Of a DNA stretch of 64,000 nucleotides, positions 16,001-45,245 are shown one piece after another. The stretch lies in NCBI RefSeq assembly GCF_037042905.1, contig NW_026974151.1, positions 248,001 to 312,000 of the forward strand. Reading direction: 5' to 3'. The position numbers and the translations under genes are program-made. Below the pieces are notes generated by a model that was not told where the DNA came from, searched no databases, and saw nothing but the letters and a program-made list of their open reading frames with translations. The DNA is from Lytechinus pictus (Eukaryota). Position 1 is the stretch's first letter; every line of letters starts with the position of its first letter.

Positions 16001-17440
16001 CAGCAGAGATTTAACAACGGTGAACAAGCCTTTGACGTCATCCTTGTTACGTGCTATCAAGTCTTTGTGATAGGTTTTGTGAGCAGCATTTAAAACATAT
16101 AATGCTGTGTTACGAGTTTTCTTATACTCGTTCAGACATTGATCGGTTCTTGTTCTGTGCCATTTCTTCTCTGCTTTACGTCTCTGCCTTTTTGCTTCTC
16201 GGACCTCGTCTGTATACCATGGCACATGAGGGCGAGTAACTACTCGCTTCATAACCAAGGGAGCATGCTTATCTAAGAGGTTCCTGAGTGTGATATCATA
16301 CAAGTTTGCTAATTCAGAAATATCTTGTGATACATGTAAATTTCTACATAGCATACTATCTGCAAGCTCTTTGTTAAACACTGTAGTGTTAATACGGGAG
16401 TATTTACGATACGACACAATCTTGTCAGTCAAAAATGGTTTACATGTGTTGAGATGGCACATGACTGGAATATGATCTGAAATAAGATATTTACATGGCC
16501 ATGGCTGACCAACAATTACATTGTCAGATTGGCGACAAATAAGGAGGTCAAGCGTGTGACCTTGAGAATGAGTACTAAAATTTACAAACTGAGCACAACA
16601 GAATGATTCAAGAAGATTTTTAAATGACTTTGATTCTGGTGAGTTTACATCAACTTGGATGTTAAAATCACCAGTTATTAAGAGTGGAACATTGGACAGT
16701 AGGTGATCTTGGATGTATTTGTTAAATTGAGAAAGAAACGATGCAACAGACACCGGATGAGACTCTGAATATGGGGCTCTGTACACATTAATCAATTTAA
16801 GATGAAATAATTTGCATACAATATCATACTCGGCAAACTCAAATGATTCCTTCTGACCAGCGGCAACCTGACAAGCATCGATAGGATTTTTGAAGAGAAG
16901 ACCTGTACCCCCGCCACGGCGACCAGTCCTTGGTTGATGGAGAAACCGATATCCAGCGGGAACAAACTCTTGCAGTACTGCAGAGTCGTTCTCAGTCAAC
17001 CAAGTCTCCGTGAGCGTAACTAAATCAGCTTTACTTTCGTTGACAAAGTCATTGATCGCAATTGTTTTGTTACGAACAGAGCGCACATTGATGGATCAAA
17101 GTTGAAGACAGTCTAATTGTGATGAAGTTCTGCTTGATGTTTGCTTTGCATGTTGAAGACTATTCCTTTTCCTTCCTCCTCGAGTTCCCCGCCTGATTTT
17201 CCTGTGCAACGTCTTCTGAATTCCATATGATGTGATTGCTTGGCATACATGATGTGGAAGAGGTGCGACAAAATCTCTCCGTAGACAGAGTTCAGTTGGA
17301 GTGTACTTGAAGACAGCATCGGGATGATCATGAAGACGTCTTGTAGCATGTAGAGTGTCATCGTGTAGCTTGTCTGGGCCGGGGTTAGGCTGGACATCGC
17401 CGGCATGAAGCAGTTCCAACTGAAAGGAGGCATTGCTGCC
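13082..17440 (-). pseudogene. LINE ORF2 (APE endonuclease + reverse transcriptase), frameshifted and interrupted
   Basis: Pieces 17096-17440, 14639-17086 (815 aa), ~14456-14650 and 13082-13315. Frame breaks near 17090 and 14650. GQAPH|HYITELL is split by the 13316-14455 insertion. Confidence 0.88.
13316..14455. mobile_element. Non-autonomous TIR DNA element with ~5-bp TSD (hAT5-like, tentative) inserted in the LINE
   Basis: CAGAGCTGCCAA...TTGGAAGCTCTG. Flanks TAATG/AAATG. Removing it restores LINE protein GQAPHYITELL. Confidence 0.8.
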
Positions 17441-19622
17441 CACTGGGCAATATGTTACCGATTACCAATATTACCGGATATTACCGGTAATAACACCCCA
17501 AAATTTGACTAAGACCAAATATTACCTTTATTACCATGTTATTACCCAAGTGATACTACCTGTTACTGTTATCACCCCCATGAAACCGACATTTTACCTA
17601 TTTACAACAGGGTGATGAGGGGTAATATGGGTAATGTTGAAAGGCTTCGATTGGTAATAACCTTGGAAACTTGAGTTATAACAGTAATATCTTACAGCAA
17701 TCCCAGTGAATTTTTCAAGTCCAAAAAGTTACTGTTATCACCCCGATGAAACCGACATTTTACCGAGTTACAACAGGGTGATGAGGGGTAATATGGGTAA
17801 TGTTGAATGGATTCGATTGGTTATAAAATTGCGAACTTGAGTAATAACAGTAATCTTACAGCAATCCCAGTGAATTTTTCGAGTCCAAAAATTACTGTTA
17901 TCACCCCGATGAAACCGACATTTTACCGAGTTACAACAGGGTGATGAGCGGTAATATGGGTAATGTTCGATTGGTTATAACATTGCGAATTTGAGTAATA
18001 ACAGTAATCTTAAAGCAATCCCAGCGAATTTTTCAAGTCCAAAAAATTACTGTTATCACCCCGATGAAACCGACATTTTCCGAGTTACAACAGGGTGATG
18101 AGGGGTAATATGGGTAATGTTGAATGGTTTCGATTGGTTATAACATTGCGAATTTGAGTAATAACAGTAATCTTACAGCAATCCCAGTGAATTTTTCAAG
18201 TCCAAAAAATTACTGTTATCACCCCGATGAAACCGACATTTTACCGAGTTACAACAGGGTGATGAGGAGTAATATGGATAATGTTGAATAGTTTCAATTG
18301 GTTATAACATTGCGAATTGGAGTAATAACAGTAATCTTACAACAATCCCAGGGAATTTTTCAAGTCCAAAAAATTACCGTTATCACCCCGATGAAACCGA
18401 CATTTTACCGAGTTACAACAGGGTGATGAGGGGTAATATGGGTAATGTTGAATGGCTTCGATTGGTTATAACCTTGGAAACTTGAGTAATAAGAGTAATT
18501 CCAACTATTTTTCTAAAAACTGTTATCACCCTCATGAAACCGACATTTTACCGAGTTACAACAGGGTGATGAGGGGTAATATGGGTAATTGTTGAATGGC
18601 TTCGATTCGGGTATAACATTTGCAAACTTGAGTAATAACAGTAATCCCAACTATTTTTTTTAAAAACTGTTATCACCCTCATGAAACCGACATTTTACCG
18701 AGTTACAACAGGGTGATGAGGGGTAATATGGGTAATGTTGAACGGCTCTGATTGGTTATAACATTGCGAACTTGAGTAATAACAGTAATCTTACAGCAAT
18801 CCCAGTGAATTTTTCGAGTCCAAAAATTACTGTTATCACCCCGATGAAACCGACATTTTACCGAGTTACAACAGGGTGATGAGGGGTAATATGGGTAATG
18901 TTGAATGGTTTCGATTGGTTATAACATTGCGAACTTGAGTAATAACAGATATCTTACAGCAATCCCAGCGAATTTTTCAAGTCCAAAAAATCACTGTTAT
19001 CACCCCGATGAAACCGACATTTTACCGAGTTACAACAGGGTGATGAGGGGATATGGGTAATGTTGAATGGTTTCGATTGGTTATAACATTGCGAACTTGA
19101 GTAATAACAGTAATCTTACAGCAATCCTATAGTGAATTTTTCAAGTCCAAAAAATTACTGTTATCACCCCGATGAAACCGACATTTTACCGAGTTACAAC
19201 AGGGTGATGAGGAATAATATGGGTAATGTTGAATGGTTTCAATTGGTTATAACATTGCGAATTGGAGTAATAACAGTAATCTTACAACAATCCCAGGGAA
19301 TTTTTCAAGTCCAAAAAATTAATGTTATCACCCCGATGAAACCGACATTTTACCGAGTTACAACACGGTGATGAGGGGTAATATGGGTAATGTTGAATGG
19401 CTTCGATTGGTTATAACATTTGCAAACTTGAGTAATAACAGCAATCTTACAGCAATCCCAGCGAATTTTTCAAGTCCAAAAAATTACTGTTATCACCACG
19501 ATGAAACCGACATTTTACCGAGTTACAACAGGGTGATGAGGGGATATGGGTAATGTTGAATGGTTTTGATTGGTTATAACATTGTGAAATTGAGTAATAA
19601 CAGTAATCTTAGAGCAATCCTA
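17441..19622 (+). repeat. 164-bp tandem array, left block (~12-13 monomers plus a unique CACTGGG-initiated 5' end)
   Basis: Monomer GTGAATTTTTCAAGTCCAAAAAATTACTGTTATCACCCCGATGAAACCGACATTTTACCGAGTTACAACAGGGTGATGAGGGGTAATATGGGTAATGTTG...AATCTTACAGCAATCCCA, counted as 164 bp. Confidence 0.95.
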
Positions 19623-19794
19623 CACTCTAAATTACAGGGATTTAAAATTTAAATCTTAAGCCGGATTTGAATGAAATTAAATCGATAAAGATTGATTTTT
19701 AATCTTAAAAGATTGCTAAACTGGTTCTTAATCTGAGTTTCAAATATATTGATTTCAATCCCAAAAGATTAAAAAAAGTTTAGAAAATTAACGG

Positions 19795-19896
19795 CAAATT
19801 GACCAATCACGGTGATAAGATTTTGTCACATGACATGTGACATGCGAGCGCGGGAATATTTTTCGATCTGCGATCTGCTACCGTCGGCGTTTGAAA
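19795..19896 (+). promoter_or_regulatory. Putative promoter/5' leader of element B
   Basis: CCAAT at 19803, a CpG-rich patch in AT-rich DNA, directly upstream of AAAATGG at 19897 (good Kozak context). Confidence 0.45.
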
Positions 19897-22800
19897 ATGG
19901 CTGACATCATGCTGAAGGCGTTTTTAGAGGAAACGCTAGGTCCAAAGGCAGGGGATACAGAGAGATTACTAGAGGGTAAGTACATTTTGTATTATCTAGG
20001 CTATCTGTATTGGAATAACTAATTTTATGACAGCAGAAAGAGTGTTTTCACAAGTAGGGAACAGTCCCGGAACGGTCTAACTTTTGTACCGGTAACTAAC
20101 GCCTGCGATCACGACGCGTCGTGATCAAGCTCAAGCTAGCTGTAATGGTGCTGGTCCCGATCTGCTACCTTAAAAATTTGACTTGAAAAAGAGCAAGAAA
20201 TATGTTTGCATTCATGTAATCATTACTCTCATGCTAAACCTGATATTCTAAAGAGTAAGCATTCCAAAGTCTTATGAAAATTTGAGCAAGAACATTGTTA
20301 TTTTAACAGAAAAGACGCCCGTGTCATTCTAAAATTGCAGGCCAGTTCCGAGACAAGCCACAAGGCACAAGGCCAGGGCGCTGCGCAGTCATAATGGGCA
20401 CTCTTACCGAGTACTATAGTCCTACCATCATACTAGATTCATACATGTAACAGTTACATGTACGCCTTGCTTAGACAGCCGTTAAGTCCAGGGTGAGGTG
20501 GGTGGAACTAAGGCCATGGGATAAAGTATGATGGTTGCCCCTAACTTGTTACTGTTAGCTAGAAAAATGTTTGTATTCCTGTAAATTCTAATGAATAATC
20601 ATGCTAAAATCTCATGAAAATTGGAGCAAGAACACTGCCATCATGCATCGCGTGCGCTGACGTCGCTTCTTTTTAGCTCCGTTTTTTTGCTTATTTTTCC
20701 GTTTTAATTTTGCTAAGTTTTAATTAATTTCTAGTTCAAATGGGTTGCGGACCCTTTTAGAAACTGTAGATTACCACATTTTTATATATTTCACTCGCCA
20801 AAGGTGAAATTCTAGCGCCAAAATATTTTACATTTCTCACACGTATTGTGCCACACCTCAGACGAGGCGCTCGCGCACCACTCCCCACTACTGTCGGGGT
20901 GGCTTTTCCTAGTGGTTTGTGTGTTGATTGGGAGTTTTTCCCAGCGTTGGTTATAACGTAGGCCTATTACGGTCTGGATTTTTATATCGGTTTTCTACAT
21001 TTTTAAGGTGTACATTTATATTATATCGGTCTTCAGTGTGGTGATATTGTTTTTTGGAATTGGAGTGATTTTACTGGATATTTTAGAGTGTTTGTGTATT
21101 GGAATGTCCTTGTAAAGTTGTGGAATTTGTGGTATTTGGGTGTGTCTGGCAAATGTTGGCGGCCATTTTTAAACTTTTAAATCAGCATTCACTCCACGTT
21201 TATCTTGACTTTTTTGCATTGCCTGGCATCTTCATCTGCTCTGCATTCTGTGCATTGCTTGCATATTCTCTATCAACATGAGCTACCTCAAGTCTTCATC
21301 ATGTTCTTTCCTTGTGGCAACCTTCATATGCATTGGTTTACGCCTTTTTTCGACAAGTCCCTCAGTGGTGTTGGATGTTTTGGACAACCAGCTTTTATTG
21401 GACCACTGGACTGCTCCTCTTGCTAGCCATTCTCTCAAGTTCGACTGCTGCCCGGTGAGTCTGTTCCATGTTTCCATTCATAGTAATCAATATCTTGGTA
21501 TGAAATTCGTATTACGACAAGCAAATTTTAAATCTGGCTTGTCTTTGCTATTGATGTTAGCTGGAGATATCAATCCAAATCCTGGACCTGCTTTAGATTC
21601 TGGTCCAAAGGATACTGGCATGAAAAACAAATCAAAATACAAGACTAAATATCCTTGTCAAATATGCAATAAAGCTGCCAAATGGGGCCAAGATTGTATT
21701 CAATGTGATTCTTGTAATGGTTGGTTTCATAAAGTCTGTTTGGGCATGAGTCAGGAGGTTTTTGATGCCCTTGCTAAACATGACTCTTATTCTTGGATTT
21801 GTTGTGACTGTGGAGCACCAAACTTTCATTCTTCCTTATTTATGGATGTGAGTGATATTCAAACTGATAATAGCTTTGAGATACTGAATGATTGTGATCT
21901 TGTATTGTCAAACAACGATTTACATATTGGACAACCTATCCAAACATCTAGTCCTAAATGTAAAAAAGTAAAATTTGAATTAAATGAACAGGTTAAAGCT
22001 AAACCTAAACCTAAACCTAAACCTAAATCTAAACCAAAACCAAAGACTCGTAACCTTAAGATCCTAAATGTGAACTGTCAAAGTGTACGAGCCAAGTTAG
22101 CAGGATTCCAGTGCCTCATTAATGATGAGGATGCTGATATCATTGTGGGAACTGAGTCGTGGCTCCATTCTGGTATTGTCTCTGGTGAAATTTTCCCATC
22201 AAATTACAATGTTTTTCGTAATGATAGAGATAGTGATAGTGATAATCTATCAAAAATCAATTGTAACTGGGGACTTACCCAAAGAGTGGCTTAATGCCAA
22301 TGTCTCCCCTATATTAAAAAAGGGTGACAGGAAACTTCCACAAAATTACAGACCTGTCTCTTTGACTTGTATTTTATGCAAACAACTCGAACACATAATT
22401 TATACTAATATTATGCAACATTTTGATAAACACTCAATACTCTGTGAAAATCAACATGGATTTAGAAGAGGTAGGTCTTGTGAAACTCAATTAGCTGGAT
22501 TAGTAAATGACCTAGCACAGACACTCAATGATCGTGGCCGAACTGATGTCTGTATTATGGACTTCAGTAAGGCGTTCGATACTGTACCGCACAAGAGACT
22601 CTTATTGAAAATCGATAACCTTGGTATTAGAGGGAAAACCAAAGCCTGGATTGATACTTTTCTTACTAATCGAAACCAGAGAGTTATACTGGATGGTCAA
22701 ACCTCCATTGATGCTTTGGTGACCTCTGGGGTCCCGCAGGGCACAGTCCTCGGCCCTCTCCTGTTTCTTGCATATATAAACGATCTACCAGACCAAATTA

Positions 22801-25800
22801 ATGCCAGGGTAAGGATGTTTGCCGACGATGTTATATTGTACAGAAATATTTCCTCAACTGAAGACTGTGATCTTCTTCAAAGTGACATTAACAAATTGTG
22901 TGAATGGCAAAATATCTGGCAAATGCAATTTAACACATCAAAGTGTTTTATTATGCATGTTACACACAAGAAGAAAATCACTCCCTATAAATACCATCTA
23001 GGGAACTCTGAACTGGGCATCGTTGACAGCTATCCTTATCTAGGTGTTCATTTGTCAAATAATTTGTCTTGGACTAATCATATTAATACAACCGTAAACA
23101 AAGCAAACAGTATACTTGGATTGTTGAAACGTAATCTATGGAATTGTTCAACTCAAACTAAAGATATCGCCTACAAGACTCTTGTGCGGCCTAGGCTGGA
23201 ATATTGTTGCTCTGTGTGGGATCCCCACCAGAAAAATCTTCAAGATAAACTTGAAAAAACTCAAAGAAGAGCAGCACGATTTGTATCTAACAAATATCAA
23301 CGCACAAGTAGTGTTACTGAAATGATGAGTATTCTAAAATGGGATACTCTCCAAGACAGGAGAACAAGTAGCCGGCTCATATTTTTGTTTAAAGAAATAC
23401 ACAATATAACTCCATGTAATATAAATCAAATCACTTCAAAAGCATCCTCCAGGCCAACAACTAGAATAACCAGACAGTCTCATGACTTAAACTTCAATAT
23501 AATCAGAGCAAATAAGGATTGCTACAAATATTCCCTCTACCCTCGTACAATTGTAGAGTGGAATTTACTTTCTCCCACCACTAAAAATGCACCTGATCTA
23601 GCTGCATTTAAGAAACAGCTAAGCAAAAACATGTTAAAGCTAACTAAAAGAAGTATATAGCGGCAGCGATTGCATGAATGGCCTGCACGTTTATAGCCTC
23701 TTGAGGCGTTCAAGTGCAGTATTTACAAGACAAGACAAGACAAGTTAGAATTGTTATTTTAACAAGAATTAAAAGACGGCCATGACCTGTGTTGTTTTAA
23801 CATTAAAGAGTGGATTAGTGCCCATGTCTGCGAACTCGCGTAACTGCGCAATTCAAATAGGTCTAGGTTTAGATCTAGACCTAGCTCTAGAACAATTAAA
23901 ACATCACATTCACATGCAATATCAATTTTTAGTCTATCTAGATCTAGTCTACAAAGACTATTTGATGCAAAAATGACGCAAAAATATTGAGAAAAGTCCT
24001 GATATCATTTGAGCAGTTTAATTTGCAAGCCCTGAACTGCATGTAAAATGATATTTAGAATCTAGACTATTGCATGTTTTGTTGTAGACTAGATAGGTCT
24101 AGGTCTACTCTTACATTAGACTCTCTAGATCTAACGCAGGTACGCATCTTCGCAGACATGGGCGCTGTGCATTAATGGGCACTCCTGCCAAACATTCCTG
24201 TAATGATTATGAATTATCAAATATTGAAGGAGTTACGGAAAGCTACGCACTTCTCGCCGCGACTCGTGTCATAAATTGTAATATTTCAGATCTTCTGGAC
24301 CCAGTCCTACTCCTAGATCTAGGTCTAGACTCTAGTCTGGAGTGCCCGTGATTTGACTAAAAATTATAATTTCACACACAAGAACACTAAATTATATAAC
24401 ACACAGGAATCAAAACATTGCTCACACACAAAAAGTCACTGACCACATCCAAATTCAGTATTAAAACTCCCAAAATATATTTAAAAAGCTGATTTTCATT
24501 ATCAAAATTGCGATTTCGGCTCAATATTTTCAAAGGTCTTAAAAATGGGGTCACTTAAAACCAGCTATAATTTTGTTGTTTGTTGCAAGCCACGAAGGTG
24601 ATGGTATGGCTGGAAAAAAAAATCAAACGAACACCCGAGACTCTCCAAATGCGATCATTGTCCTAATCAAAGCATTGTTGTAGTTTATAAACACACGTGC
24701 TTAATAATATATTGTATGCACAGGGAAAATTAATTATTTCCTTCTGAGAAAAATGGAAATTTATGGAATATTTTGTACACAAAATGAGAGCTGCTCGCAT
24801 GTGACATCACAGAGTTGCCAGTTTGCGTTTGATCGATTGCAACTTTTAAAAATCATAATTTTTTTTTATCCTTCATCGATTTCTTGTCAAACCTTCACTG
24901 ATCTATTTTTCTCATTTTTCTGCTTTTGTTAAAACCAACTTGATATCAGGGTCGACTTCCCCTTTAAAAGAGTTATCACAGAATTATTTAGAATTTTGAA
25001 AATAAATCTATATTTTCAATATATTTTTGTTTCAGAGAACTTTGGCAACACTTCCCAAAGGAGACACACATTCTGTCATAATCGCTTCACTTTGATAGTC
25101 CCGTCCCATTTGTGATACGGATCAGATTCTGGACCCAAAAATACGCATTTGGCGTTTTAGAATTACATTGCATTACAGTATTCAGGAAATGTGATGTTTG
25201 AATTAGATCATGGAATTGTTATGCTTGAAATGTGGAAGACTTATTCATGCTGATACAGTGAGAGAGTATGCTCGTCATTTACGTATGTCCCATGCCGTCT
25301 TTGGGAATGGAGAGACACTTGTTTGTGGTCAAAATGGTTGTATGCGAACATTCACCCTCATGAACTCACTGTTACGCCACATACGTCGACACCATGCCCA
25401 CATGCCAGTTGCACATAATGACCCTTTACATGGTGACTTTGTTCATGAAGAGGATGATGATGAAGGAGAGGATGACCAAGCAAACTATGATGAGGATGTA
25501 GAAGATGCTGAACATGTTTATGAACCGGAAGATTTCAATCTAGGTTCATTGAAGAAGCTGGCTATGAATTTGGTCATAAAATTAAGGTCTTCAACATCAA
25601 CCACATACTCTACCATTCAAAGTGTCATCACTTGTACGAAAAACATGTTTCAAGAAACACTTTCATCTCTACGGCAAAGAATGATAACTGTAATGCAACA
25701 TCATGGAATCGACACCAACTCACCTGATGTACAGGAGCTTAATCATCAATTTCAAGAGCTTGAAAATCCTTATATGGGTATTGAAACACCAGGTCAGCAG

Positions 25801-28800
25801 ATGAAATACATGATTGAAAACTTAATGTTGGTTCCTCCAGTTGAGCGGGCATTGGGAACAAGAATTGATCACAAGTTGGACAGAAAAACTGGCCAAACAA
25901 ACCAAGTAGTTGTCACAGAGACATTCCAGTACCTCCCTATGCTAGAAGTTCTCAAACTTGTACTGAAACCAGATGTAAGAGCCCTCATTGACTCAGAAAT
26001 TAAATCACCAGAAGGCATCTTAAGGGGATATATGGATGGCACACAATATCATCAGCATGAAGTGTTGCATAATCACCCACATGCTCTTAGAATTGTACTC
26101 TACTATGACGATGTGGAAGTCGTTAACCCTCTAGGGAGCAAAAAGGGCCTCCACAAATTGGGCCTGTTTTATTACAGCATTCAAAATTTCCCACCATGTT
26201 ACAATTCCACTATGAACAGTATATTTCTTCTAGCAGTATGTTATAGCTCAGACGTGAAGAAATATGGCTTCAATGCTATTTTGCGACCATTTCTTGATGA
26301 AATGAAAAGACTTGAAAGTGAAAATGGCGTAGAGATCCTCATTAATGATAACATGATAGAGGTTCATGGTACTTTGGTCTCATTTGTTGGGGACTCACTT
26401 GCAGCACATGATATTTTGGGTTTTCTAAGCCCATCAGCAAGAAAGCTGTGCAGGTTGTGCAAAGCGACTCGAGAAGAAGCCCAAACTAAGTTTTCAGAAG
26501 AGGACTTTCAACTGCGTGAAATGGATGAACATGATGAAATAGCTCAGCGTGCTGCCAACAGGGGACGTGGTGATCCAGATAGTGGCATAAGAAATGAATG
26601 CCCATTGAATAGGTTGAGTTCTTTCCACTGTGTGAATAATTTTAACTTTGATGTTATGCATGACCTACTTGAGGGAGTGTGTCAGTATGAGATTAAACTC
26701 ATACTTAACCAACTTCTCTTTGTTGATCACTTCTTAACATTGGGTGAACTTAATCACCGCTTATCATCTTTTCATTATGCTTTCAACGATAAGAAAAACA
26801 AGCCAACTTGCCTTTCAATGGAACGAATAAGGAATGCACAAGACCACAAATTGGGTGAAAAGGCCTCCCAAATGTGGTGTCTAACTAGGATGTTGCCTCT
26901 GCTGATTGGGGATCTTATTCCTCAGGACAACATGCACTATGAACTACTACTGTTGCTGTTACAGTGCTTGGATATAAGTTATTCACCAGTAGTTTCTATA
27001 CCTCAGACTGTAATACTGAAATACCTGATTTGCGATCATCACAGTCATTTCAAGCTCGTTTTTCCTGAAAGCCGAATGATAAACAAGCACCATCACATGG
27101 TGCACTACCCGATGTGCATGAGAATGTGTGGACCACTAGTACTTTCACAATGTCTACGGTTTGAAATTAAGCACAATTTCGGCAAGAGATTGGCTGCAAT
27201 TAATTGTAATTTCAAAAACATTTGCAAAAGCATCGCTGCCAAGCACCAGGTGATTCAGTGTGCTGTTTGGATGGGAAAAGGTCTAAGAGAAGATTTTGAA
27301 GGCATTAATGGAAGTGTTGTTACAGTTTCATCATTGGAAGGAAGTCAGTGTATCATTGAAAGCCTTCACCTTCATGAGGACACTGAAATCTTTTCAGCCA
27401 GTAAAGTTACAGTGTATGGAATCGAGTACATTCCTAACCTCTACTTGGCAACAGCCATTGATGATGATGAACCACAGTTTAGTCGAATAGTGGTTATTTT
27501 GGTCCCAGGGACAACAGCAGGAGACATCAAATTTGTTGTTAGAAAGTGTTGGAATAGAGGGTTTTTCCGCCATTTCCATGCCTTCTGTGTCCAAGAAATG
27601 GAGATGTTTGAGTACAGTTTGGTGACGCTTGATGACCTTATTGATCATGTGCCTTTGACTGCATTATCATCCTACGAGAACAACAGTTCAAGAGTGTACC
27701 TGTGCCCTCGACATAGTCTAATACAACATAGGTACATATGAATTCAATGATGTGATTATACATGTATGCTCCTGCCCCATTAATGAATTTTGAGTTTTGT
27801 ATTAATATAACTTTTTAGGGGGGGGCCTCGCAAACCAAAGTTGGCATGCACACGAAAATGTGCACAAAGAGAACATTAGACCTCATCTATGAAAAAAAAA
27901 ATAAAAAAGGCTTTTGGACATTTTCAAGTTGTTCATGTCTATGAATTTCTTACATGTACATGTATAGTTCATCATCTAGATCAATTTTCAGTTTGAATAA
28001 ATTATAAATCAAGAGGGAGACCTGACTGGCTTACAACCAAACTTTACATGTATATCTCACTTAATTAGCTTTTTCTTTCATACACAAAATAATCAAAATA
28101 AATTCATATTTTTGTTCGGGTTGGTCTTTGGTCATGAACGATCACATGCATAATTGCATGTACTTCTATCAAATGATGTCTGATTTTAAAAATGTAGTGT
28201 TCAAAGAAAATAAAAACTTTAAAGAAAAGGGTGAAATTGCACCGCTGAAAACGTGGAGGATTACTCATCAAAATTTGCCTATTGCCCCCCCCCCCTCCCC
28301 TGCACATTTTTGGTTAATACATGTACATAAAATATGTACATTGTACATGTATAGTATTTCCTAAATTTCACTTGTGCATCTTTCCTTTTTCCCCGTATAG
28401 AGAATGATGTTGACCTAGAGGTTCTACGCACAATGTCAGAGGGGGATCTTGAGAAACTCGGAATATCGTTTGGGTTGAGACGAAAATTGACTCTGGCAAT
28501 TAGTAAGTCACAAAAACAACTGGAGAGTACCACTGATGGAGTCGTTATGCATGTAAGTATTTTCTTTTGTAGTCCGATTATGTACTTTAAATAAATGTAT
28601 GTCGGAATATGAAATGCTATAAATGAAGAATGTGTTATTTTTTTGTAAAGATGGATGATTTAGATTAGCTTCAGTTGCCTTTAATGCTGTCATGTATTGA
28701 TGTCAAGTGCGGTTGTGTAAAGGTTGAGCTAGAAGTTGGTTAAATTTTGATTGTCTTTATTGCATTATACTACATGTAGGTGTAAAAAAAAATTAAAAAT

Positions 28801-34800: not shown

Positions 34801-35178
34801 CAGGATGCAGGATAATGTTGTCATTAACATCTACATATATATGTTTTCAAATTCTAATTACAGCAAGGAACAAACATGGAGGAAGCTATAAACAAGATCA
34901 AGAAGGAATACAGGCAGCCCCTCATAGTAGCCCTCGGAAAGGAGACTGGACAGAAGCAGTACTTCTTGTGCCTGGACAGCATTCCTGTGAGCGCCGGGGC
35001 AACAATAGTGGAAGCTTTTGACAAGTTATTCAAATGTTTTTTCATCTTTGGCGTTACCTATCCTGACATTCTCTCCCATTTCTACGATTATTTTGCGGCG
35101 TTTGTCTACGAAATTTGGCCAACGCAGAGGGTTAAGCCTACTGTGCGTTCATTTGCATGTGCCATTAAGTCCTCTTAA
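19897..35178 (+). CDS. SAM-domain accessory protein of transposon B (SAMD3-like), 10 exons, 483 aa
   Basis: Exons 19897-19975, 28401-28552, 29040-29093, 29579-29718, 30250-30343, 31430-31615, 32312-32482, 33325-33472, 34069-34181, 34864-35178. All GT-AG, 1452 nt in total, one open frame. SAM signature LEENDVDLEVLRTMSEGDLEKLGISFGLRRKL spans exons 1-2. Confidence 0.88.
20632..23744 (+). mobile_element. LINE (CR1-group/RTE-X-like) with internal deletion, inserted in intron 1 of element B
   Basis: PHD finger (CQICNKAAKWGQDCIQCDSCNGWFHKVC...WICCDC), start of APE (NVNCQSV, GTESWL), RT (DFSKAFD, GVPQGTVLGP, FADD), 3' tail (ACAAG)4. The 5' boundary is approximate: it interrupts a GAGCAAGAA..TTGTTATTTTAACA intron repeat also seen at 20284. 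Confidence 0.88.
21278..23660 (+). pseudogene. LINE ORF (PHD-APE-RT) with most of the endonuclease deleted
   Basis: ORF 21278-22294 stops matching APE after YNVFRNDR. The sequence jumps near 22240 to pre-RT IIYQKSIVTGDLPKEW in another frame (ORF 22122-23660). Confidence 0.85.
25210..27741 (+). CDS. EnSpm/CMC-type DDE transposase, 843 aa, intronless, apparently intact
   Basis: Two N-terminal C2H2 fingers (CLKC..HLRMSH; CGQNGC..HIRRHH), YYDDVEVVNPLG, VGDSLAAHDILGF, CRLC, DVMHDLLEG, KHHHMVHYP, CLRFEIKH. Lies between matching CACTC TIRs. Confidence 0.92.
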   Translation: MELLCLKCGRLIHADTVREYARHLRMSHAVFGNGETLVCGQNGCMRTFTLMNSLLRHIRRHHAHMPVAHNDPLHGDFVHEEDDDEGEDDQANYDEDVEDAEHVYEPEDFNLGSLKKLAMNLVIKLRSSTSTTYSTIQSVITCTKNMFQETLSSLRQRMITVMQHHGIDTNSPDVQELNHQFQELENPYMGIETPGQQMKYMIENLMLVPPVERALGTRIDHKLDRKTGQTNQVVVTETFQYLPMLEVLKLVLKPDVRALIDSEIKSPEGILRGYMDGTQYHQHEVLHNHPHALRIVLYYDDVEVVNPLGSKKGLHKLGLFYYSIQNFPPCYNSTMNSIFLLAVCYSSDVKKYGFNAILRPFLDEMKRLESENGVEILINDNMIEVHGTLVSFVGDSLAAHDILGFLSPSARKLCRLCKATREEAQTKFSEEDFQLREMDEHDEIAQRAANRGRGDPDSGIRNECPLNRLSSFHCVNNFNFDVMHDLLEGVCQYEIKLILNQLLFVDHFLTLGELNHRLSSFHYAFNDKKNKPTCLSMERIRNAQDHKLGEKASQMWCLTRMLPLLIGDLIPQDNMHYELLLLLLQCLDISYSPVVSIPQTVILKYLICDHHSHFKLVFPESRMINKHHHMVHYPMCMRMCGPLVLSQCLRFEIKHNFGKRLAAINCNFKNICKSIAAKHQVIQCAVWMGKGLREDFEGINGSVVTVSSLEGSQCIIESLHLHEDTEIFSASKVTVYGIEYIPNLYLATAIDDDEPQFSRIVVILVPGTTAGDIKFVVRKCWNRGFFRHFHAFCVQEMEMFEYSLVTLDDLIDHVPLTALSSYENNSSRVYLCPRHSLIQHRYI
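30639..30976. repeat. Palindromic element with tRNA-like (A/B box) outer ends
   Basis: Arms ~30639-30800 and ~30825-30976. The left arm on - reads ACCAGAGATGGCCTGGTGGTGTAGTC...GCAGGTTCGAATCCCTCCTGGCTCC. The right arm is the same sequence with a short deletion before the B box. Confidence 0.75.
32575..32960. repeat. Dispersed repeat with GTTGCCATGGTAAC / TTTTGGTGTGGG motifs
   Basis: Related copies at ~49100-49490 and ~62570-63010 (AATTGTATCCCCCGAA, GCTCTACCGGCTGCAGTTCTTCT). Confidence 0.7.
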
Positions 35179-35186
35179 TTTACTCT

Positions 35187-37968
35187 TAGTCCAAGAGCAT
35201 TAAGTCAAAATAGGCCCAAACCTGGACATTTCTCATAACAAACTGATTTTCCTGATGATTTTCAGGATAGGTCTAGGAATATGTGTATAAAAAAGTCTTG
35301 ACAAAACTCTATCTATAGCGATCCTTAAGTATTTACTTGTGTTGTTGTGTATCATAATACATTATTAAGTATATAGTGAAAAGTGAGTATAATTGACATA
35401 AAATGGACAATATTCCTTGAAGTTTGGTCTCATCCATGCTATATGGCTATCATATTCCTATATAATCATCAATCCTGGATTTAGTCGGTAATATAGGAGT
35501 AAAATACCTTGACTTGCCCCATAACAATGTGAATTTTTCCAATATTTTTAAAGCTACAATCTCAACATCATTCATGTGTGATTAGACTTGTCAAATGGGA
35601 CTGAACATACTTATCATTCTCAACCATGCTTTTTCAATTTTTCTCGGCATATTATGTGTTGTGCAATCGTTTTGGGAATACAATTCTAAGAATTAATAAT
35701 GCGTTTATTTGTACCATGACTTAACAAGGTCCAATTACTGCATAGTAATAGTGTGCTGAATAGCACAGAGACAGAAAATAGGCCTAATCATGGTCATGGA
35801 TATATGGGCCAACATATATCCATGTATAGTAAAATTGATGTTATATATTCATAATCGTATAAAGCTATGCCTCTATAGTGTTCTTTAACAGAGGAATAAT
35901 GAAGAGAAACCATCTGAATCTAACGTGGAGAAGGTTTACGGTACACCATGTGGGTAGTCCTGAAAAGGACTGTTGGGAGGATAAGATGAATAGAGAAAAT
36001 AGTGAGAATAATATAGGAAGAGAGGGCGAAGGTGAGAAGGAAGAGAGGAAAGGGAGATATTCTTTCGTGAGAATTGGTGAGTCCTAAAAAGGATCGTAAA
36101 CCAGATGAGAAGAGTAGGAGAGTAGAGTCTTGGCGGCGATGAGTAGAAGCGATGAAGACTCATCTCTTCATCGCGTCTACTCATCGCCGCCAAGACTCTA
36201 CTCTCCTACTCTTCTCATCTGGTTTACAGCCCTTTTTAGGACTCACCAATTCTCACGAAAGAATATCTCCCTTTCCTCTCTTCCTTCTCACCTTCGCCCT
36301 CTCTTCCTATATTATTCTCACTATTTTCTCTATTCATCTTATCCTCCCAACAGTCCTTTTCAGGACTACCCACATGGTGTACCGTAAACCTTCTCCACGT
36401 TATCTCAACCACCATGCAAACCTTCAAAGAACATCTGAATCTAGTTTACACTTCCATTCATTCAGTGTAAATAGAACATGACAGACGGGATTTTATCATT
36501 CTGTGTCTGATATGAACCAAAAACATGTACATTATAAGGACATTTAGCCAGTTTGGACTACAATATTAAACTTCGGAAATTCTTTGTGTATGATAAATAC
36601 ACTGCTTTTGAATTAAATCGTATTCTAAGACTAAAAGTAACCAAAAAATTAATGGTCAATAATAATGTAATATGTGGAGTGCATAACCGGGCAATACCAA
36701 GTTCTTCCTGTCTGATGGACTTGTACCTGTATACATTATAGAAACAATGGGCTTCCTAGAATTTCTGTCATAAAGACAAGAAAATCCCTTCCCTAAAGAA
36801 CTCCTTATAATTTCCAAAATAATAATTATTTTCGGATTACATCTACCAAAAGGTGATTCCTGTGGTTATCAGGGAATTGTTTTAACATTTGAATTATTTT
36901 CTCAAAGGCTGACTGAGCACAGCTTTTGAAGACAAAATGACCCAGTATCAAAAGTCACAAAATCAAGAGGGATAACTACCTTCCAACAGTTGTGTGAAAA
37001 ACCATTAACTCATTTATTTTGTACTCGGTTCATGCCCAGTCAACTCATAGCTTTGATGAATAAGCCTGATGTGAATTCCAAAAGAAATTGATGACTACCT
37101 TTCTCACACAGAGGATGGAGTCACATGACTTTGTGGATATTGATATTGGTTCATTTTGTCTTCAATTGGTGATCAGTCAGCCATTGAGTAATGAATACGT
37201 CCAATCTGTACGCAACCGTAGGATAAATTGTTACCTTAGAAATTAAAAGGAGTTATTGAGTGTTTAATAATATCATGCGAGATTAAAGGCCGTACAGGAC
37301 ACTATCGGGTTATATTGAATACTTGAATCTACTTCAGTCTCTACCCCTTGAAGCATACGTCTATTGCTACATTGCAAGATACTTTCTGTGTTTGTCTAGT
37401 TAGTTTGGTAGCAAAGTCATTCCAACTTTGACAAATAGCATTATATTTGTCAGCAATTTGGGGTTCCATTTTAGTATAATGGGGGGGGGGGGCGGCTGTA
37501 TATTGATTTTTTTTTTTTGTATTAATGAATTCTCAAATCTCTCAATGAAGACTTAATTGAATTCCTTGTGCATCGAAACATATATTTAGATGCCTTATTT
37601 TTTAGATCATCTTGTAAAATTATAATATATTTGAAAAATGGTGGCCATTTTGGAAGCCATTTTGGGCGCCATCTTGTTTTGGGCATTTTGAGAGCTTTCA
37701 GTAATGATTTCATCTGATTCCTTGTGCCATTAAACATATGTTTAGACACTTCATTTGTATTTCCAGCATGACTACCTGCTAAAATATTGATAAAAATTGA
37801 AAATGGCAGCCATTTTGGACGCCATCTTGGATTTCGGAAAAGCGACACTTGGGATTTTCGGGGACTTTTAGTATCGGTATGTTATTCTACACATATTTCT
37901 AAACCTATCCTGAAAGAATTCACCTTGTTATGAAAAATGTCCAGGTTGAAGCTAATACTCTTGGCCTA
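35187..37968. mobile_element. Non-autonomous TIR element with TAG...CTA ends (Academ-like, tentative)
   Basis: Left TAGTCCAAGAGCATTA...AACCTGGACATTTCTCATAACAA...CAGGATAGGTCTAGGAATATGTGTA. Right, reverse-complemented: TAGGCCAAGAGTATTA...AACCTGGACATTTTTCATAACAA...CAGGATAGGTTTAGAAATATGTGTA. No clear TSD. Confidence 0.65.
35923..36400. repeat. Near-perfect foldback (two ~236-bp arms, 6-nt loop), TA-flanked
   Basis: TA|ACGTGGAGAAGGTTTACGGTACACC...GCGATGAAGA-CTCATC-TCTTCATCGC...GGTGTACCGTAAACCTTCTCCACGT|TA. Mirror ORFs appear on both strands. Confidence 0.92.
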
Positions 37969-37989
37969 TATATAGATCTTACAGTCCAG

Positions 37990-38800
37990 TCCAGTCCAGC
38001 ATAAATGACTTTACCATCATTTCTTTAGAATAGCTACCAGAACATACTAAAAGTTTGAGAAAATTAGAGGGAATTAAAGCCGTAAAATTTGCATGATATG
38101 CAAATTAGCATCTTCCGTATGAGAAAATTCTTTTCCCTATAGATTTCCATGAAAGTGCCACATGAAAACAATGATGATTATATTCATGTTTCCATTGACC
38201 ACATTTTTAGCTTTATAACATGAAAAGTATTTGCCCAATATTCAAATTAACATCAGCGAACAAAGGAAATTCATATTTTTCATATATTTGCATATGTATA
38301 CCATATTGAAATAATTCAAGTGTAAAAAAAATATGCGAATAAACATGATGGGAACATTTTGAGATATTCAAATAAGCTTCCTTCATTGAAATTCTTATTT
38401 TCTCTGTAAAATTGCATTTATTATTTGATTAGAACAAATAATTCGTCTTATCTAATGTTTTGATTCATTTTTTGGGGTTGAATATGCAAATAGGCTTCCA
38501 GCAATAGAAATGAACAAATTCATATTTTCATCATAATTTGGATTATTATCTTTGATTTGGATCTCAGTTACCTATTAAATGTGTTAAAGCCAGTGTATTC
38601 AATGTCTGTGAAAATGATAGACATATTTTCGAACCAATAGTGTGATCCTTATTTGCATATTATGCAAATTTTACTGCTTTCCACTACTTCGATTTTCCTA
38701 AACTTTTATAGTATGTTGTTCTGGTAGCTATTTTAAGTAAATGGTGGTGAAATCGTTTCGGTTGCGATTTGTTTTGGGTTATTTCATATTTTGACTAGAC
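37990..38800. mobile_element. Degenerate inverted-repeat MITE
   Basis: AATAGCTACCAGAACATACTAAAAGTTT...GTAAAATTTGCATGATATGCAAAT mirrored by ATTTGCATATTATGCAAATTTTAC...AAACTTTTATAGTATGTTGTTCTGGTAGCTATT. Confidence 0.6.
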
Positions 38801-40826
38801 CAATATGAATTGAGGTATATGCAAATAATTTAGTTTTTGTTGAGCCACCGAGGTGGATCGAAACTAAGGGATCCTTGGCGGCGTCCGTCCGTCCGTTATT
38901 TGGGGATCAAAGGTCAAATGAGGTCTTGAATAACTGCAACCATTTTTTTTCTCTCTCTCTATTCATACAAGTAAGCTATTCTTGGTATTTCACTATTAAT
39001 CAGAATCAATTTACTAGAATGATTGCGAGACACATGGCTATTGCCTTGTTCTGTTTCCAAAACCGAAAAAAGAAAACCTAGAATATTGATTTTAAAAGAT
39101 TGTCTGTATTGTGAATAACAGTAGAAAAATTGTTGTTGGTAACTTGTTAACTATGCTTGAAATTGTCAGGAATACAAGTTGAAAACAGGAAATTGGAAAA
39201 CAAACCATTATTTTGGGTATAATAACTTTTTTTCTCAGTGTGCATTGTCGCAGTCATTGTTATTAAATCTTATGACCACAATATGAGCATGGTCTTATTT
39301 AATTCACCGATCTCAGGCAGGGTAGGTTCAACTGCCTAATTCCCTTCCAGTGTACAGTCTGTGCAAAGTGGGTTTTCAACATAGCCTATACATGTACGTG
39401 ATGGTCAGTTATAACAGCCTATAAACGTTCTTGATGGTCAGTGATAAAAGCAACCAACAAAAATGTATAAGTGTGCTTAATTTTCTAGTTTGCAGAAGCG
39501 TTATTCTGTATGTGGATGTTTAATTCTCTATTTTGCAAAAAAAGAAAAAGAAAGAAGAATATTCCAATACATGTATGGGTCACTTTCGACAGAGGTCAAA
39601 AGGTCATTGAACTTTCCATGAAAAGCATTGCTGCTTTAAAATGCTTTAAAATGTTAAAGTGTTCCGTCTTTTTGCAGTGTTGTATTAGAAATGGTAACTG
39701 TTTTGCCTCTGTATACTTATTCGTAATATTTCTGCCAATGTATACTAGTAAATCTAAACATGTGTCTGGTTACTTCTTTAGGTCTCTATTTACCATGATA
39801 TTTCATGTATATACATTGTACAATTTTTCAAGCTATTCATCTCTTTAAAGCTCAATTCAAGTTTTGGGAAACAGAATTTTTTTTTTTGTATTTTGCTTCC
39901 ATTTTACAATAATATGGAAGATTTTCTCAATAAACCCCAGTGAACAAAAGGATTTGCCACCAAATATATTCTAAGACTGAATTTGATCAGCAATAGCACT
40001 GAGAAATCATTTCGATCTGGGCCAGTGCCTTTTACTACTTAGCGCTGACCACACGCAAAACAAATGATCGAGCTGCATGCCCGCTATTTGCACCGGACCG
40101 CAGTGATTTGCCTTGCCCACAGCACTGGCTGAATAGCTTACCAATAGTAGCCTCGGTTTCATCAAACCCATCAGATATTAACACTAAATTCGTTGGCAAT
40201 CATGCATAGACCATAACAATATTTGGCACAGGTATATTTATATATAAATGGAATAATATGAGGACATATATGATAGAATTAGAAACTAGAATTGAGCTTT
40301 AACCCTTATCTGACTTGGGGAGGAGGGTCATTTTGACCCCCCCCCCCCCGTACAAAATCCACGACTGTCGTAATGTCTCGCATTTTTTAAGACCAAGTTT
40401 GCCAAAGATATGTTGTGCAAATTGTGTATTTTTCATTTATAAACGTTTTGTTATGTATATTTTTGAGCTTCAATGATATTAATAAATCAAACTTACCAAA
40501 CTTTGATTTTGGAGTGTTCAGTATTCAATTTCATTGCTTCAGCATATCTAGAATGGAGATACTTTGATTTAAATCTCTATGAGGATTTTAAAAAAAGAAG
40601 TCCCGAAAAGGATTGTTTTTCAATCTTTATCAGGGTTAATTTTAATCTAGAAAGATTTATAATTTAAATCTTTTGAACTTATTTTTTAATCCTTTACAGA
40701 TTAAAACTTTTTAATCCTAGCGAAGAGTAATTATCAATCCACATCGATTGGTCCCTACCTACAGTACATGAAAGATTTAAAAATAAATCCTATAGATTTA
40801 AATTTAAATCCCTGTAATTTAGAGTG

Positions 40827-43800
40827 TATAGTGAATTTTTCAAGTCCAGAAAATGACTGTTATCACCCCGATGAAACCGACATTTTACCGAGTTACAACA
40901 GGGTGATGAGGGGTAATATGGGTAATGTTGAATGGTTTCGATTGGTTATAACATTGCGAACTTTAGTAATAACAGTAATCTTACAGCAATCCTATAGTGA
41001 ATTTTTCAAGTCCAAAAAATTACTGTTATCACCCCGATGAAACCGACATTTTACCGAGTTACAACAGGGTGATGAGGAATAATATGGGTAATGTTGAATG
41101 GTTTCAATTGGTTATAACATTGCGCATTGGAGTAATAACAGTAATCTTACAACAATCCCAGGGAATTTTTCAAGTCCAAAAAATTAATGTTATCACCCCG
41201 ATGAAACCGACATTTTACCGAGTTACAACAGGGTGATGAGGGGTAATATGGGTAATGTTGAATGGCTTCGATTGGTTATAACATTTGCAAACTTGAGTAA
41301 TAACAGCAATCTTACAGCAATCCCAGCGAATTTTTCAAGTCCAAAAAATTACTGTTATCACCCCGATGAAACCGACATTTTACCGAGTTACAACAGGGTG
41401 ATGAGGGGATATGGGTAATGTTGAATGGTTTTGATTGGTTATAACATTGTGAAATTGAGTAATAACAGTAATCTTAGAGCAATCCTATAGTGAATTTTTC
41501 AAGTCCTAAAAATTACTGTTATCACCCCGATGAAACCGACATTTTACCGAGTTACAACTGGGTGATGAGGAGTAATATGGGTAATGTTGAATGGTTTCAA
41601 TTGGTTATAACATTGCGAATTGGAGTAATAACAGTAATCTTACAACAATCCCAGGGAATTTTTCAAGTCCAAAAAATTACCGTTATCACCCCGATGAAAC
41701 CGACATTTTACCGAGTTACAACAGGGTGATGAGGGGTAATATGGGTAATGTTGAATGGCTTCGATTGGTTATAACATTTGCAAACTTGAGTAATAACAGC
41801 AATCTTACAGCAATCCCAGCGAATTTTTCAAGTCCAAAAAATTACTGTTATCACCCCGATGAAACCGACATTTTACCGAGTTACAACAGGGTGATGAGGG
41901 GATATGGGTAATGTTGAATGGTTTTGATTGGTTATAACATTGTGAAATTGAGTAATAACAGTAATCTTAGAGCAATCCTATAGTGAATTTTTCAAGTTCA
42001 GAAAATGACTGTTATCACCCCGATGAAACCGACATTTTACCGAGTTACAACAGGGTGATGAGGAGTAATATGGGTAATGTTGAATGGTTTCAATTGGTTA
42101 TAACATTGCGAATTGGAGTAATAACAGTAATCTTACAACAATCCCAGGGAATTTTTAAAGTCCAAAAAATTACCGTTATCACCCCCGATGAAACCGACAT
42201 TTTACCGAGTTACAACAGGGTGATGACGGGTAATATGGGTAATGTTGAATGGCTTCGATTCGGGTATAACATTTGCAAACTTGAGTAATAACAGTAATCC
42301 CAACTATTTAAAAAAAAAACTGTTATCACCCTCATGAAACCGACATTTTACCGAGTTACAACAGGGTGATGAGGGGTAATATGGGTAATGTTGAACGGCT
42401 CTGATTGGTTATAACATTGCGAACTTGAGTAATAACAGTAATCTTAGAGCAATCCCAGTGAATTTTTCAAGTCCAAAAAATTACTGTTATCACCCCGATG
42501 AACCCGACATTTTACCGAGTTACAACAGGGTGATGAGGGGTAATATGGGTAATGTTGAACGGCTCTGATTGGTTATAACATTGCGAACTTGAGTAATAAC
42601 AGTAATCTTACAGCAATCCCAGTGAATTTTACAAGTACAAAAAAATTACTGTTATCACCCCGATGAAACCGACATTTTACCGAGTTACAACAGGGTGATG
42701 AGGGGTAATATGGGTAATGTTGAATGGTTTCGATTGGTTATAACATTGCGAACTTGAGTAATAACAGTAATCTTACAGCAATCACAGTGAATTTTTCAAG
42801 TCCAAAAAATTACTGTTATCACCCCGATGAAACCGACATTTTACCGAGTTACAACAGGGTGATGAGGGGTAATATGGGTAATGTTGAATGGCTTCGATTG
42901 GTTATAACATTTGCAAACTTGCATTTATACAGCAATCCCAGATGAATTTTTCAAGTCCAAAAAGTTATACTGTTATCACCCCGATGAAACCGACATTTTA
43001 CCGAGTTACAACAGGGTGATGAGGGGTAATATGGGTAATGTTGAATGGTTTCGATTGGTTATAACATTGCGAACTTGAGTAATAACAGTAATCTTACAGC
43101 AATCCCAGTGAATTTTTCAAGTCCAAAAAATTACTGTTATCACCCCGATGAAACCGACATTTTACCGAGTTACAACAGGGTGATGAGGGGGTAATATGGG
43201 TAATGTTGAATGGTTTCGATTGGTTATAACATTGTGAGCTTGAGTAATAACAGTAATCTTACAGCAATCCCAGTGAATTTTTCAAGTCCTAAAAATTACT
43301 GTTATCACCCCGACGAAACCGATATTTTACCGAGTTACAACAGGGTGATGAGGGGTAATATGGGTAATGTTGAATGGTTTCAATTGGTTATAACATTGCG
43401 AATTGGAGTAATAACAGTAATCTTACAACAATCCCAGGGAATTTTTCAAGTCCAAAAAATTACCGTTATCACCCCGATGAAACCGACATTTTACCGAGTT
43501 ACAACAGGGTGATGAGGGGTAATATTGGTAATGTTGAATGGTTTCGATTGGTTATAACATTGCGAATTGGAGTAATAACAGTAAACTTACAACAATCCCA
43601 GTGAATTTTTCAAGTCCAAAAAGTTACTGTTATCACCCCGATGAAACCGACATTTTACCAAGTTACAACAGGGTGATGAGGGGTAATATGGGTAATGTTG
43701 AATGGCTTCGATTGGTTATAACATTTGCAAACTTGCATTTATACAGCAATCCCAGATGAATTTTTCAAGTCCAAAAAGTTATACTGTTATCACCCCGATG

Positions 43801-45061
43801 AAACCGACATTTTACCGAGTTACAACAGGGTGATGAGGGGTAATATGGGTAATGTTCAATGGTTTCGATTGGTTATAACATTGCGAACTTGAGTAATAAC
43901 AGTAATCTTACAGCAATCCCAGTGAATTTTTCAAGTCCAAAAAATTACTGTTATCACCCCGATGAAACCGACATTTTACCGAGTTACAACAGGGTGATGA
44001 GGGGTAATATGGGTAATGTTGAATGGCTTCGATTGGTTATAACATTTGCAAACTTGCATTTATACAGCAATCCCAGATGAATTTTTCAAGTCCAAAAAGT
44101 TATACTGTTATCACCCCGATGAAACCGACATTTTACCGAGTTACAACAGGGTGATGAGGGGTAATATGGGTAATGTTGAATGGTTTCGATTGGTTATAAC
44201 ATTGCGAACTTGAGTAATAACAGTAATCTTACAGCAATCCCAGTGAATTTTTCAAGTCCTAAAAATTACTGTTATCACCCCGACGAAACCGATATTTTAC
44301 CGAGTTACAACAGGGTGATGAGGGGTAATATGGGTAATGTTGAATGGTTTCGATTGGTTATAACATTTGCAAACTTGAGTATACAGCAATCCCAGATGAA
44401 TTTTTCAAGTCCAAAAAATTATACTGTTATCACCCCGATGAAACCGACATTTTACCGAGTTACAACAGGGTGATGAGGGGTAATATGCAATGTTGAATGG
44501 TTTCGATTGGTTATAACATTGCGAACTTGAGTAATAACAGTAATCTTACAGCAATCCCAGTGAATTTTTCAAGTCCAAAAAATTACTGTTATCACCCCGA
44601 TGAAACCGACATTTTACCGAGTTACAACAGGGTGATGAGGGGTAATATGGTTAATGTTGAATGGTTTCGATTGGTTATAACATTGCGAACTTGAGTAATA
44701 ACAGTAAACTTACAACAATCCCAGTTAATTTTTCAAGTCCAAAAAGTTACTGTTATCACCCCGATGAAACCGACATTTTACCGAGTTACAACAGGGTGAT
44801 GAGGGGTAATATGGGTAATGTTGGATGGATTTGATTAGTTATAACATTGTGAGCTTGAGTAATAACAGTAATCCCAGCGAAATGTTCCAAGTCAAACATA
44901 TATTACTCTCATCACCCTGATGAAACCGACATTTTACCGAGTTACAACAGGGTGATGAGGGGTAATATGGGTAATGTTGGATGGCTTCGATTGGTTATAA
45001 CCCGGGGTAATACCATTGCAAACTTGAGTAATAACAGTAATCTCTCACAGCAATCGCAGTG
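40827..45061 (+). repeat. 164-bp tandem array, right block (~26 monomers), ending ...CAGCAATCGCAGTG
   Basis: Same monomer as 17441-19622, resuming in register after the TIR of element B. Confidence 0.95.
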
Positions 45062-45245
45062 TAGCAACTCTGCTACGCTTTCGTTTTTGGTTCATTCAAA
45101 AATAAATTCATTATTCAATTCTCAGCAAAATTTTCCCCATTATTATCATTCACTGGAAAGTTCCATGCTCAAAGTTTGTTAACCTTAAATTCTGGTTTAG
45201 ACCGGTTCACGGTCATGTCTAGACAGTTGCAATAATTTCAATAGC

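Follow-up and report, generated by a model that had tools for sequence, protein, structure and literature searches.

The origin of satellite DNA from transposons is already documented, both for plant En/Spm elements, with Atenspm giving rise to ENSAT1 in Arabidopsis and the CACTA-like Jozin to CficCl-61-40 in Chenopodium, and for animal MITEs (miniature transposable elements with inverted repeats), whose satellites include Xenopus miDNA4 and Xstir, bivalve pearl/BIV160, and Drosophila SGM and DINE-TR1 (PMC9659126). Here we describe a clean animal example, and not a new principle, in a 64,000-nucleotide stretch of the Lytechinus pictus genome (assembly GCF_037042905.1, contig NW_026974151.1, here C31, positions 248,001 to 312,000 of the forward strand; hereafter the window). 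The window contains a tandem array of a ~164-bp unit, which is very probably the subterminal tandem-repeat region of a single 53.9-kb EnSpm/CACTA (CMC) transposon that lies within a young long interspersed nuclear element (LINE). Three sets of sequences bear on this reading: a dispersed family of 1.24-kb relatives in the same genome, a relative on a scaffold filed under the sea star Asterias rubens, and a second giant transposon, element B, that is nested in the array.

Like the plant En/Spm elements, the Lytechinus element is of the cut-and-paste type, with short terminal inverted repeats (TIRs), arrays of short motifs near its ends, a transposase of the TnpD type (Transposase_21/DUF4218-like), and internal tandem repeats that build up satellite-like arrays. 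It differs from them in its animal host, in a target-site duplication (TSD) of 2 bp rather than 3 bp, in termini that read CCCAC...GTGGG rather than CACTA, in its size of 33-54 kb, and in a kilobase-scale array of 154-164-bp units retained across two genomes. Animal elements of the EnSpm/CACTA kind and the MITEs derived from them (for example ENS1_Cis of Ciona savignyi, CMC-NA_1/2; PMC6004678) share with it 2-bp TSDs, a CAC...GTG core and short non-autonomous derivatives in many copies, whereas the two extra outer C/G bases and the long internal tandem array set it apart in this comparison by description (PMC6004678). As with the MITE-borne satellites, a short element spreads one to a few ~150-bp units and some copies expand into arrays; unlike those systems, the longest array is found here in the transposase-bearing parent and not in a MITE, and there is no genome-wide satellite.

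Ends and insertion site of the 53.9-kb element

The LINE in the window shares 99% identity with full-length copies that continue unbroken past position 17438, and its second open reading frame (ORF2, 14639-17086) encodes an APE endonuclease and a reverse transcriptase (RT; Pfam Exo_endo_phos and RVT_1). The left terminus of the element is CCCACTGGG at 17439, and the window-type terminus CCCACTGGGCAATATG is unique in the genome. The original prediction, made from the sequence alone, had the array begin abruptly at CACTGGG (17441). Homology does start abruptly, but CC precedes CACTGGG in all 30 copies examined, so that the terminus lies at 17439 and the CC does not belong to the flank.

Uninterrupted copies of the LINE read ...GCATTGCTG followed by TTTACAC across the insertion site, with the continuation TTTACACTATATGG. 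The right junction was predicted beforehand as the right terminus plus TG plus this LINE continuation and was searched for as an exact pattern; the predicted 25 nt have one exact occurrence in the 812-Mb genome, at C31:319303-319327, on the same contig and strand. The junction, CCCAGTGGG+TG+TTTACACTATATGG, is unique in the genome and the match extends to AATGCCCAGTGGG (25- and 29-nt exact). The last 29 nt of the element are identical at 28 of 29 positions to the right arm of the dispersed family, which ends in ...GGTAAAATGCCCAGTGGG. The right terminus, ...AATGCCCAGTGGG, falls at window-equivalent 71311, 7.3 kb beyond the end of the window and 26 kb beyond the GCAGTG at 45061 that had been proposed as the right end. 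The 5' part of the LINE resumes after the right TSD with 99% identity (C31:319312-319808, outside the window). The element spans C31:265439-319311, which is window 17439 to window-equivalent 71311, a length of 53,873 bp, or ~32.7 kb without the nested element B. It had been noted that no TSD was visible, with CC on the left and TA on the right; a TG does flank the element, at 17437-17438 and after the real right end, and was missed because its right copy lies outside the window. The coordinates of the features are collected in Table 1.

The array, its length or the 54-kb linkage could in principle be a mis-join of repeats, as contig C31 is small and very transposon-rich, and tandem arrays are prone to collapse and expansion in assemblies. 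We nonetheless give this very little credence: the two halves of the LINE meet with single-base precision, a 2-bp duplication flanks termini that match those of the family, and a chance mis-join would not generate this; element B is also bordered by clean TA duplications, in phase with the array unit.

Table 1. Features of the window. Positions are those of the window; a dot marks a feature without strand.
Feature	Position	Strand	Evidence and remarks
Host LINE, 3' part	12978..17438	-	Pfam; 99% identity to full-length copies
TSD TG, left copy	17437..17438	.	LINE copies; right copy at 71312-71313 (C31:319312-319313)
Left arm: terminal inverted repeat CCCACTGGGCA and subterminal region with five TATTAC	17439..17562	+	Family homology, motif counts
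Array block 1 (units 1-12 plus the start of unit 13)	17563..19622	+	TRF, unit boundaries
Element B, giant TIR element of 21,204 bp	19623..40826	+	Junction sequences; TA duplication at 19621-22 and 40827-28
Array block 2 (remainder of unit 13 through unit 39)	40829..45061	+	TRF, unit boundaries, edge divergence
Element interior	45062..64000	+	Mostly single copy; continues 7.3 kb past the window
EnSpm/CACTA-like (TnpD-type) transposase gene	51920..54252	+	Homologues, alignment; single copy in the genome

Organization of the tandem array

Between the left terminus and the array is a non-repeated left arm of ~124 bp, in which five copies of TATTAC give a density of ~40 per kb compared to a background of 0.2-0.5 per kb; this matches the ~120 unique base pairs rich in TATTACC that the first inspection had described. 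The arm is 92.7% identical to that of the Asterias-scaffold relative and 88.7% identical to that of the 1.24-kb family. The tandem array that follows was likewise correctly recognized. Tandem Repeats Finder (TRF) reports it as two blocks of a ~164-bp unit, at 17563-19620 (12.8 copies) and 40830-45001 (25.8 copies), with 86-87% matches, and cutting the units by hand yields 39 units totaling 6,293 bp, with homology reaching 45061. The proposed span of 17441-45061 is not array throughout: the segment between the blocks is element B, which sits in unit 13 at a variant reading CCTATAGTG with the phase of the unit kept across the insertion. The window has no runs of N.

The consensus unit carries two GTAATA motifs and an 11-bp inverted pair, both as originally described, and the halves of the pair are present as ATTACTGTTAT in 18 of the 39 units and as ATAACAGTAAT in 28. 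The statement that typical monomers end in CCCAGTG does not hold, as this motif is present in 12 of the 39 units only, the remainder having CCCAGGG, CCCAGCG, CCTATAGTG or CCCAGATG at the site. Both the 1.24-kb copies and the Asterias-scaffold relative have CCCAGCG here, and CCCAGTG is best read as a derived minority state, a CpG-to-TpG change that would have spread within the array. The units are not copies of a terminus: a monomer compared with the arms is similar at the level of motifs only (z about 4), and we rejected the idea that the right part of an element was amplified head-to-tail.

At its distal edge the similarity to the monomer ends after ...GCAGTG at 45061, following the last two units, which are the most diverged of block 2. 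This end corresponds to phase 275 of the 1.24-kb family reference, unlike the array boundary of the family itself, and no terminus-like sequence was found at this junction of array and unique DNA. A 20-nt unit marker, present in 35 of the 39 units, has 38 exact occurrences in the pattern search of the 812-Mb genome, 35 of them in the window array and none on contig C31 past 45061, so the array does not restart there. The next largest arrays of the unit are ~1.5 kb and ~0.7 kb long. The units are arranged head-to-tail but the repeat lacks the abundance of a genome-wide satellite, amounting to 6.3 kb at one locus.

These data bear directly on the original prediction, that 17441-45061 is a small non-autonomous CACTA element with right terminus GCAGTG whose right end was amplified about 38-fold. 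The CACTG and CAGTG at the two edges, the CCCAGTG in 12 units and the orientation of GTAATA in the units, which matches that of the family right arm, are all in keeping with it. However, only 5-7 bases are common to the edges, which lack a TSD whereas a perfect one is present at 17437-38 and 71312-13, no second full-length copy of the segment 44990-45061 exists in the genome, and the relatives read CCCAGCG at the motif. Aligning the edges as a TIR pair (17441-17620 with the reverse complement of 44880-45061) recovers CACTG and scattered motifs, with a score of 28 compared to a shuffle maximum of 24, and this pairing was rejected. We regard such an element as extremely improbable. What survives is its kind: the element is of the CACTA/EnSpm type, but it is 53.9 kb long and has its own, broken, transposase gene.

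Variation among the units indicates how the array has changed. Mean pairwise identity is 92.7%, and for 26 of the 39 units there is another that is at least 98% identical; the most diverged are the units at the edges and three truncated units. Local duplications of two, three and four units are seen at 98-100% identity: units 10-12 correspond to units 14-16 at 99.4%, spanning the site of element B, and there is a three-unit period in units 14-20. At the 98% threshold 19 unit lineages remain, and since the host LINE is less than 1% diverged from its relatives, most of the array probably predates the entry of the element into the LINE.

Transposase gene and a relative in the Asterias rubens assembly

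The element interior beyond the array is single copy for ~6.9 kb (45062-51919) apart from a ~1-kb repeat at 45565-46553, and further small repeats are nested at 59158-59742 and 60012-61089. The first of these two is a ~570-590-bp element whose scored copies are 97-99% identical, with 6,676 first-look candidates for the query containing it. The transposase gene that follows the single-copy segment has 266 animal homologues, some of them named 'transposase domain-containing' and some with Transposase_21 or DUF4218 domains; among 28 aligned homologues, DUF4218 is detected in seven and Transposase_21 in two (E<0.001). No Pfam hit other than Transposase_21 was obtained for the transposase itself. 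In the alignment D310, D387 and C406-x2-C409 are invariant; DDE transposases of the TnpD/Transposase_21 type are described as having a C(2)C motif that follows the second catalytic D (PMC12730594).

Two lesions break this gene in the window, a stop codon in frame at 53459-53461 and a frame shift at ~53533-53545. Both lesions are read through in contigs of other sequencing runs and in the Asterias-scaffold relative. In an index of sequencing runs that holds contigs only, each run with at most one-fifth of the words, contigs of three other runs (93-95% alike) have a 2-letter indel difference at the frame shift, and contigs of a fourth run (100% alike; RNA or DNA) carry the stop.

The closest protein homologue is encoded at locus L085, within a 183-kb scaffold that is unplaced in the assembly of Asterias rubens (CABPRM030000019.1, GCA_902459465.3), where a relative of the whole element spans L085:261-20893. 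It has the same left terminus, an arm 92.7% identical to that in the window and, starting after ~140 bp, 154-bp units in tandem (14.7 + 1.7, ~16 in all) that are ~80% identical to the window units. The transposase gene lies ~6.5 kb past the array, a spacing similar to that in the window, with 80-90% DNA identity, and is split by a BEL/Pao retrotransposon. The presence of arm, array and transposase together in this relative shows that they belong together, and that the long array is inherited in the transposase-bearing lineage; the expansion is thus not private to the Lytechinus locus. With the window coming from a sea urchin, the presence of a whole-element relative on a scaffold filed under a sea star reflects either horizontal transfer or a foreign scaffold in the assembly. 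The BEL/Pao element nested in L085 has at most 58-65% protein identity to any copy in the Lytechinus genome. We also note that an A. rubens protein named 'homeobox protein CDX-1-like', which is 58% identical to the N-terminal part of the transposase, is encoded inside the related element, and the name is therefore probably an annotation error.

The principal competitor to a single 53.9-kb transposon is that a small, array-bearing, non-autonomous copy entered the LINE and grew to 54 kb by nesting, with the transposase contributed by an unrelated nested element. Nesting has clearly occurred, in that element B is certainly present and several small repeats lie within 45062-64000; moreover, dozens of other transposase families of the superfamily are found in the genome, and homology of the window to the 1.24-kb family covers positions 1-387 only, with positions 388-1263 absent from the window. 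Yet in L085, from another genome, the arm, array and transposase occur jointly and are similarly spaced; within the window there is no TIR pair around the transposase gene, and nothing resembling a terminus where the array gives way to unique sequence. Furthermore, the array does not resume downstream, and the genome has one copy each of the transposase gene and of the window-type left terminus. We consider growth by nesting improbable and favor the single transposon.

Several observations nonetheless weigh against the latter. The last 7.3 kb were assessed by exact patterns and coordinates, the sequence tested being the final 29 nt and the flank. At its very ends the element has CC/GG, with CAC beginning at the third base, rather than the 'invariable 5'-CAC' reported for CMC elements (PMC4079192, PMC6004678). 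For the transposase itself the match to PF02992 is weak (E=0.01, below the cut-off) and the family assignment is made via its homologues. The DNA between array and transposase cannot be aligned between the window and L085, and the pairing of this transposase with these termini is suggested by their co-location in two genomes. Finally, C10 carries a partial copy of 53911-60077 at 99% identity (G000:C10:30201855-30214871), which includes the 3' part of the transposase gene and 5.8 kb downstream; it shows no visible element ends and represents either part of a second copy of this giant element or a segmental duplication. The nested element at 59158-59742 is missing from this copy, and so was inserted after that duplication. 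The C10 copy is itself interrupted by two insertions, of ~3.3 and ~4.1 kb.

Dispersed 1.24-kb family

The 122 bp from 17441 match at least 40 dispersed loci at full length (from 120 first-look candidates), all with the same start base and with unrelated flanks. These copies are non-coding, with a modal length of 1,239 bp and 95-97% mutual identity, and have inverted termini CCCACTGGGCA and TGCCCAGTGGG. Exact matches to the 15-nt terminus number 208 in the genome against zero in the control, corresponding to ~100 copies. The outermost CC/GG is invariant in 30 left ends and 23 right ends, with CAC/GTG at bases 3-5. A 2-bp TSD is present in 22 of 23 complete copies, the flanks match at 3 bp in only one of the 23, and the TSD sequences are varied (AA, AT, TG, CT, GT, CA, TA, TT, AC and GA). 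Each copy consists of a 130-bp left arm, 1.5 repeat units and then ~880 bp with GTAATA near the right end; the right 230 bp contain eight GTAATA in the same orientation as in the array units. It is to this family, and not to the 53.9-kb copy in the window, that the description of a MITE or deletion derivative applies, and the 1.24-kb copies appear from their shared arms and units to be a reduced form of the transposase-bearing lineage.

Two older copies have more units, ~9.5 on C7 and ~4.5 on C9, and keep the family arm and the post-array sequence. It had been anticipated that dispersed loci would show the same two ends, variable numbers of monomers and 2-bp TSDs. The left end is indeed shared, the number of units varies (1.5, 4.5, 9.5 and 38.5) and the TSDs are of 2 bp, but 44990-45061 does not recur at full length and is not an end common to these loci. 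Pairs of termini 1.9-3.3 kb apart were considered as a possible smaller autonomous copy and rejected, the four that were read being 1.24-kb copies lengthened by a nested insertion or by duplication of an internal part. Among other copies, one (L020:1721 onward; G000:C5:47062126-47065213) is broken at position 223 by an element beginning CACTGGCGTAAATCC, and two lie head to head ~1.5 kb apart at C5:38906660-38908363.

Classification

Termini of the form 5'-CAC...GTG-3' are typical of CMC elements (PMC4079192, PMC6004678, PMC12730594), as are short TSDs of 2-3 bp; TSDs of 2 bp are reported for animal CACTA elements and of 2-5 bp for the wider clade. The Lytechinus sequences have a TnpD-type DDE transposase, as recognized via its homologues, and TSDs of 2 bp that include the TG/TG of the 54-kb copy. 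Subterminal motifs are in opposite orientations, with five TATTAC in the left arm, eight GTAATA on the right and two GTAATA per unit as putative sites. The TnpD-like transposase, 2-bp TSDs, CAC/GTG core and opposed motifs fit an animal EnSpm/CACTA element (PMC6004678, PMC4079192, PMC12730594). The additional pair of C/G bases outside the core is atypical. Two other superfamilies were considered and rejected. Tc1/mariner elements require a TA-specific duplication, and the TSDs here are varied. ISL2EU is the other superfamily with 2-bp TSDs and has an IS5/Harbinger-like transposase, for which there is no Pfam hit in the transposase of this element.

Element B, the host LINE and the neighborhood

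Element B has termini CACTCTAAATTACAGGG.../...CCCTGTAATTTAGAGTG and an ORF at 25210-27741 that codes for a transposase-like protein of 843 aa with no Pfam hit. This sequence is itself single copy, with ~50 paralogous loci at 27-37% identity, many of them with open frames. Further ORFs of element B, at 21278-22294 and 22122-23660, encode a PHD finger and a reverse transcriptase, respectively. Like the array-bearing element it is giant, with a CAC-type terminus and a 2-bp duplication; the two transposases can be distantly aligned over the catalytic region, a similarity that is not significant by BLASTP. It differs in its transposase family and its termini, in lacking a 164-bp array, and in having subterminal motifs of the GATTTAAA type rather than GTAATA. 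No association was seen between the coordinates of the ~50 paralogs and the family termini, using the first 100 of the 208 termini. Six loci related to the element B transposase lie within ~185 kb of contig C31 (208-392 kb), a region that is a dense nest of giant DNA transposons.

The host LINE totals ~3.8 kb, has a single ORF for APE and RT, and ends 3' in an (ATT)n-like tail. Its family is young, with copies that are 95-99% identical, many being 5'-truncated at different points. A TSD of the LINE was sought in order to place the insertions in sequence, and none is visible at its (ATT)n-type 3' end. Nested in the 3' region of the LINE is a 1.14-kb repeat (13316-14455) that matches a copy on C2 at 100% identity and many others at 95-98%, with 613 first-look candidates; it looks like a non-autonomous element that was active very recently.

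Evolution of the array and its significance

A scenario consistent with these comparisons is that most of the array was already aboard when the element entered the LINE and that the array travels with the element, with its length changing by unequal exchange, which would have been ongoing since insertion. The GTAATA and TATTAC motifs are probably the subterminal binding sites for the transposase. The ~100 copies of the 1.24-kb family would be internal-deletion relatives that keep both arms and 1.5 units, and may have been moved in trans by a transposase of this lineage. More tentatively, the kilobase-scale array, which adjoins the left arm in both genomes and is built of 154- and 164-bp units with two binding-type motifs apiece, may be a conserved working part of the element, a mobile satellite block, with the 1.5-unit remnants in the ~100 copies seeding arrays elsewhere; we hold this as a possibility on the doubtful side. 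If it were true, and with the window coming from a sea urchin, the 80-93% identity to the sea-star scaffold would represent the transfer of an element together with its array between distant echinoderms, and the two propositions taken jointly are likewise speculative.

For the annotation of this region, the consequence is that it is a 54-kb nested transposon complex in a LINE and not a 27-kb satellite. All stages are present in one genome: a parent with a long subterminal array, ~100 derivatives that scatter 1.5-unit seeds over all chromosomes, and a few seeds, now of 4.5 and 9.5 units, that have begun to expand.

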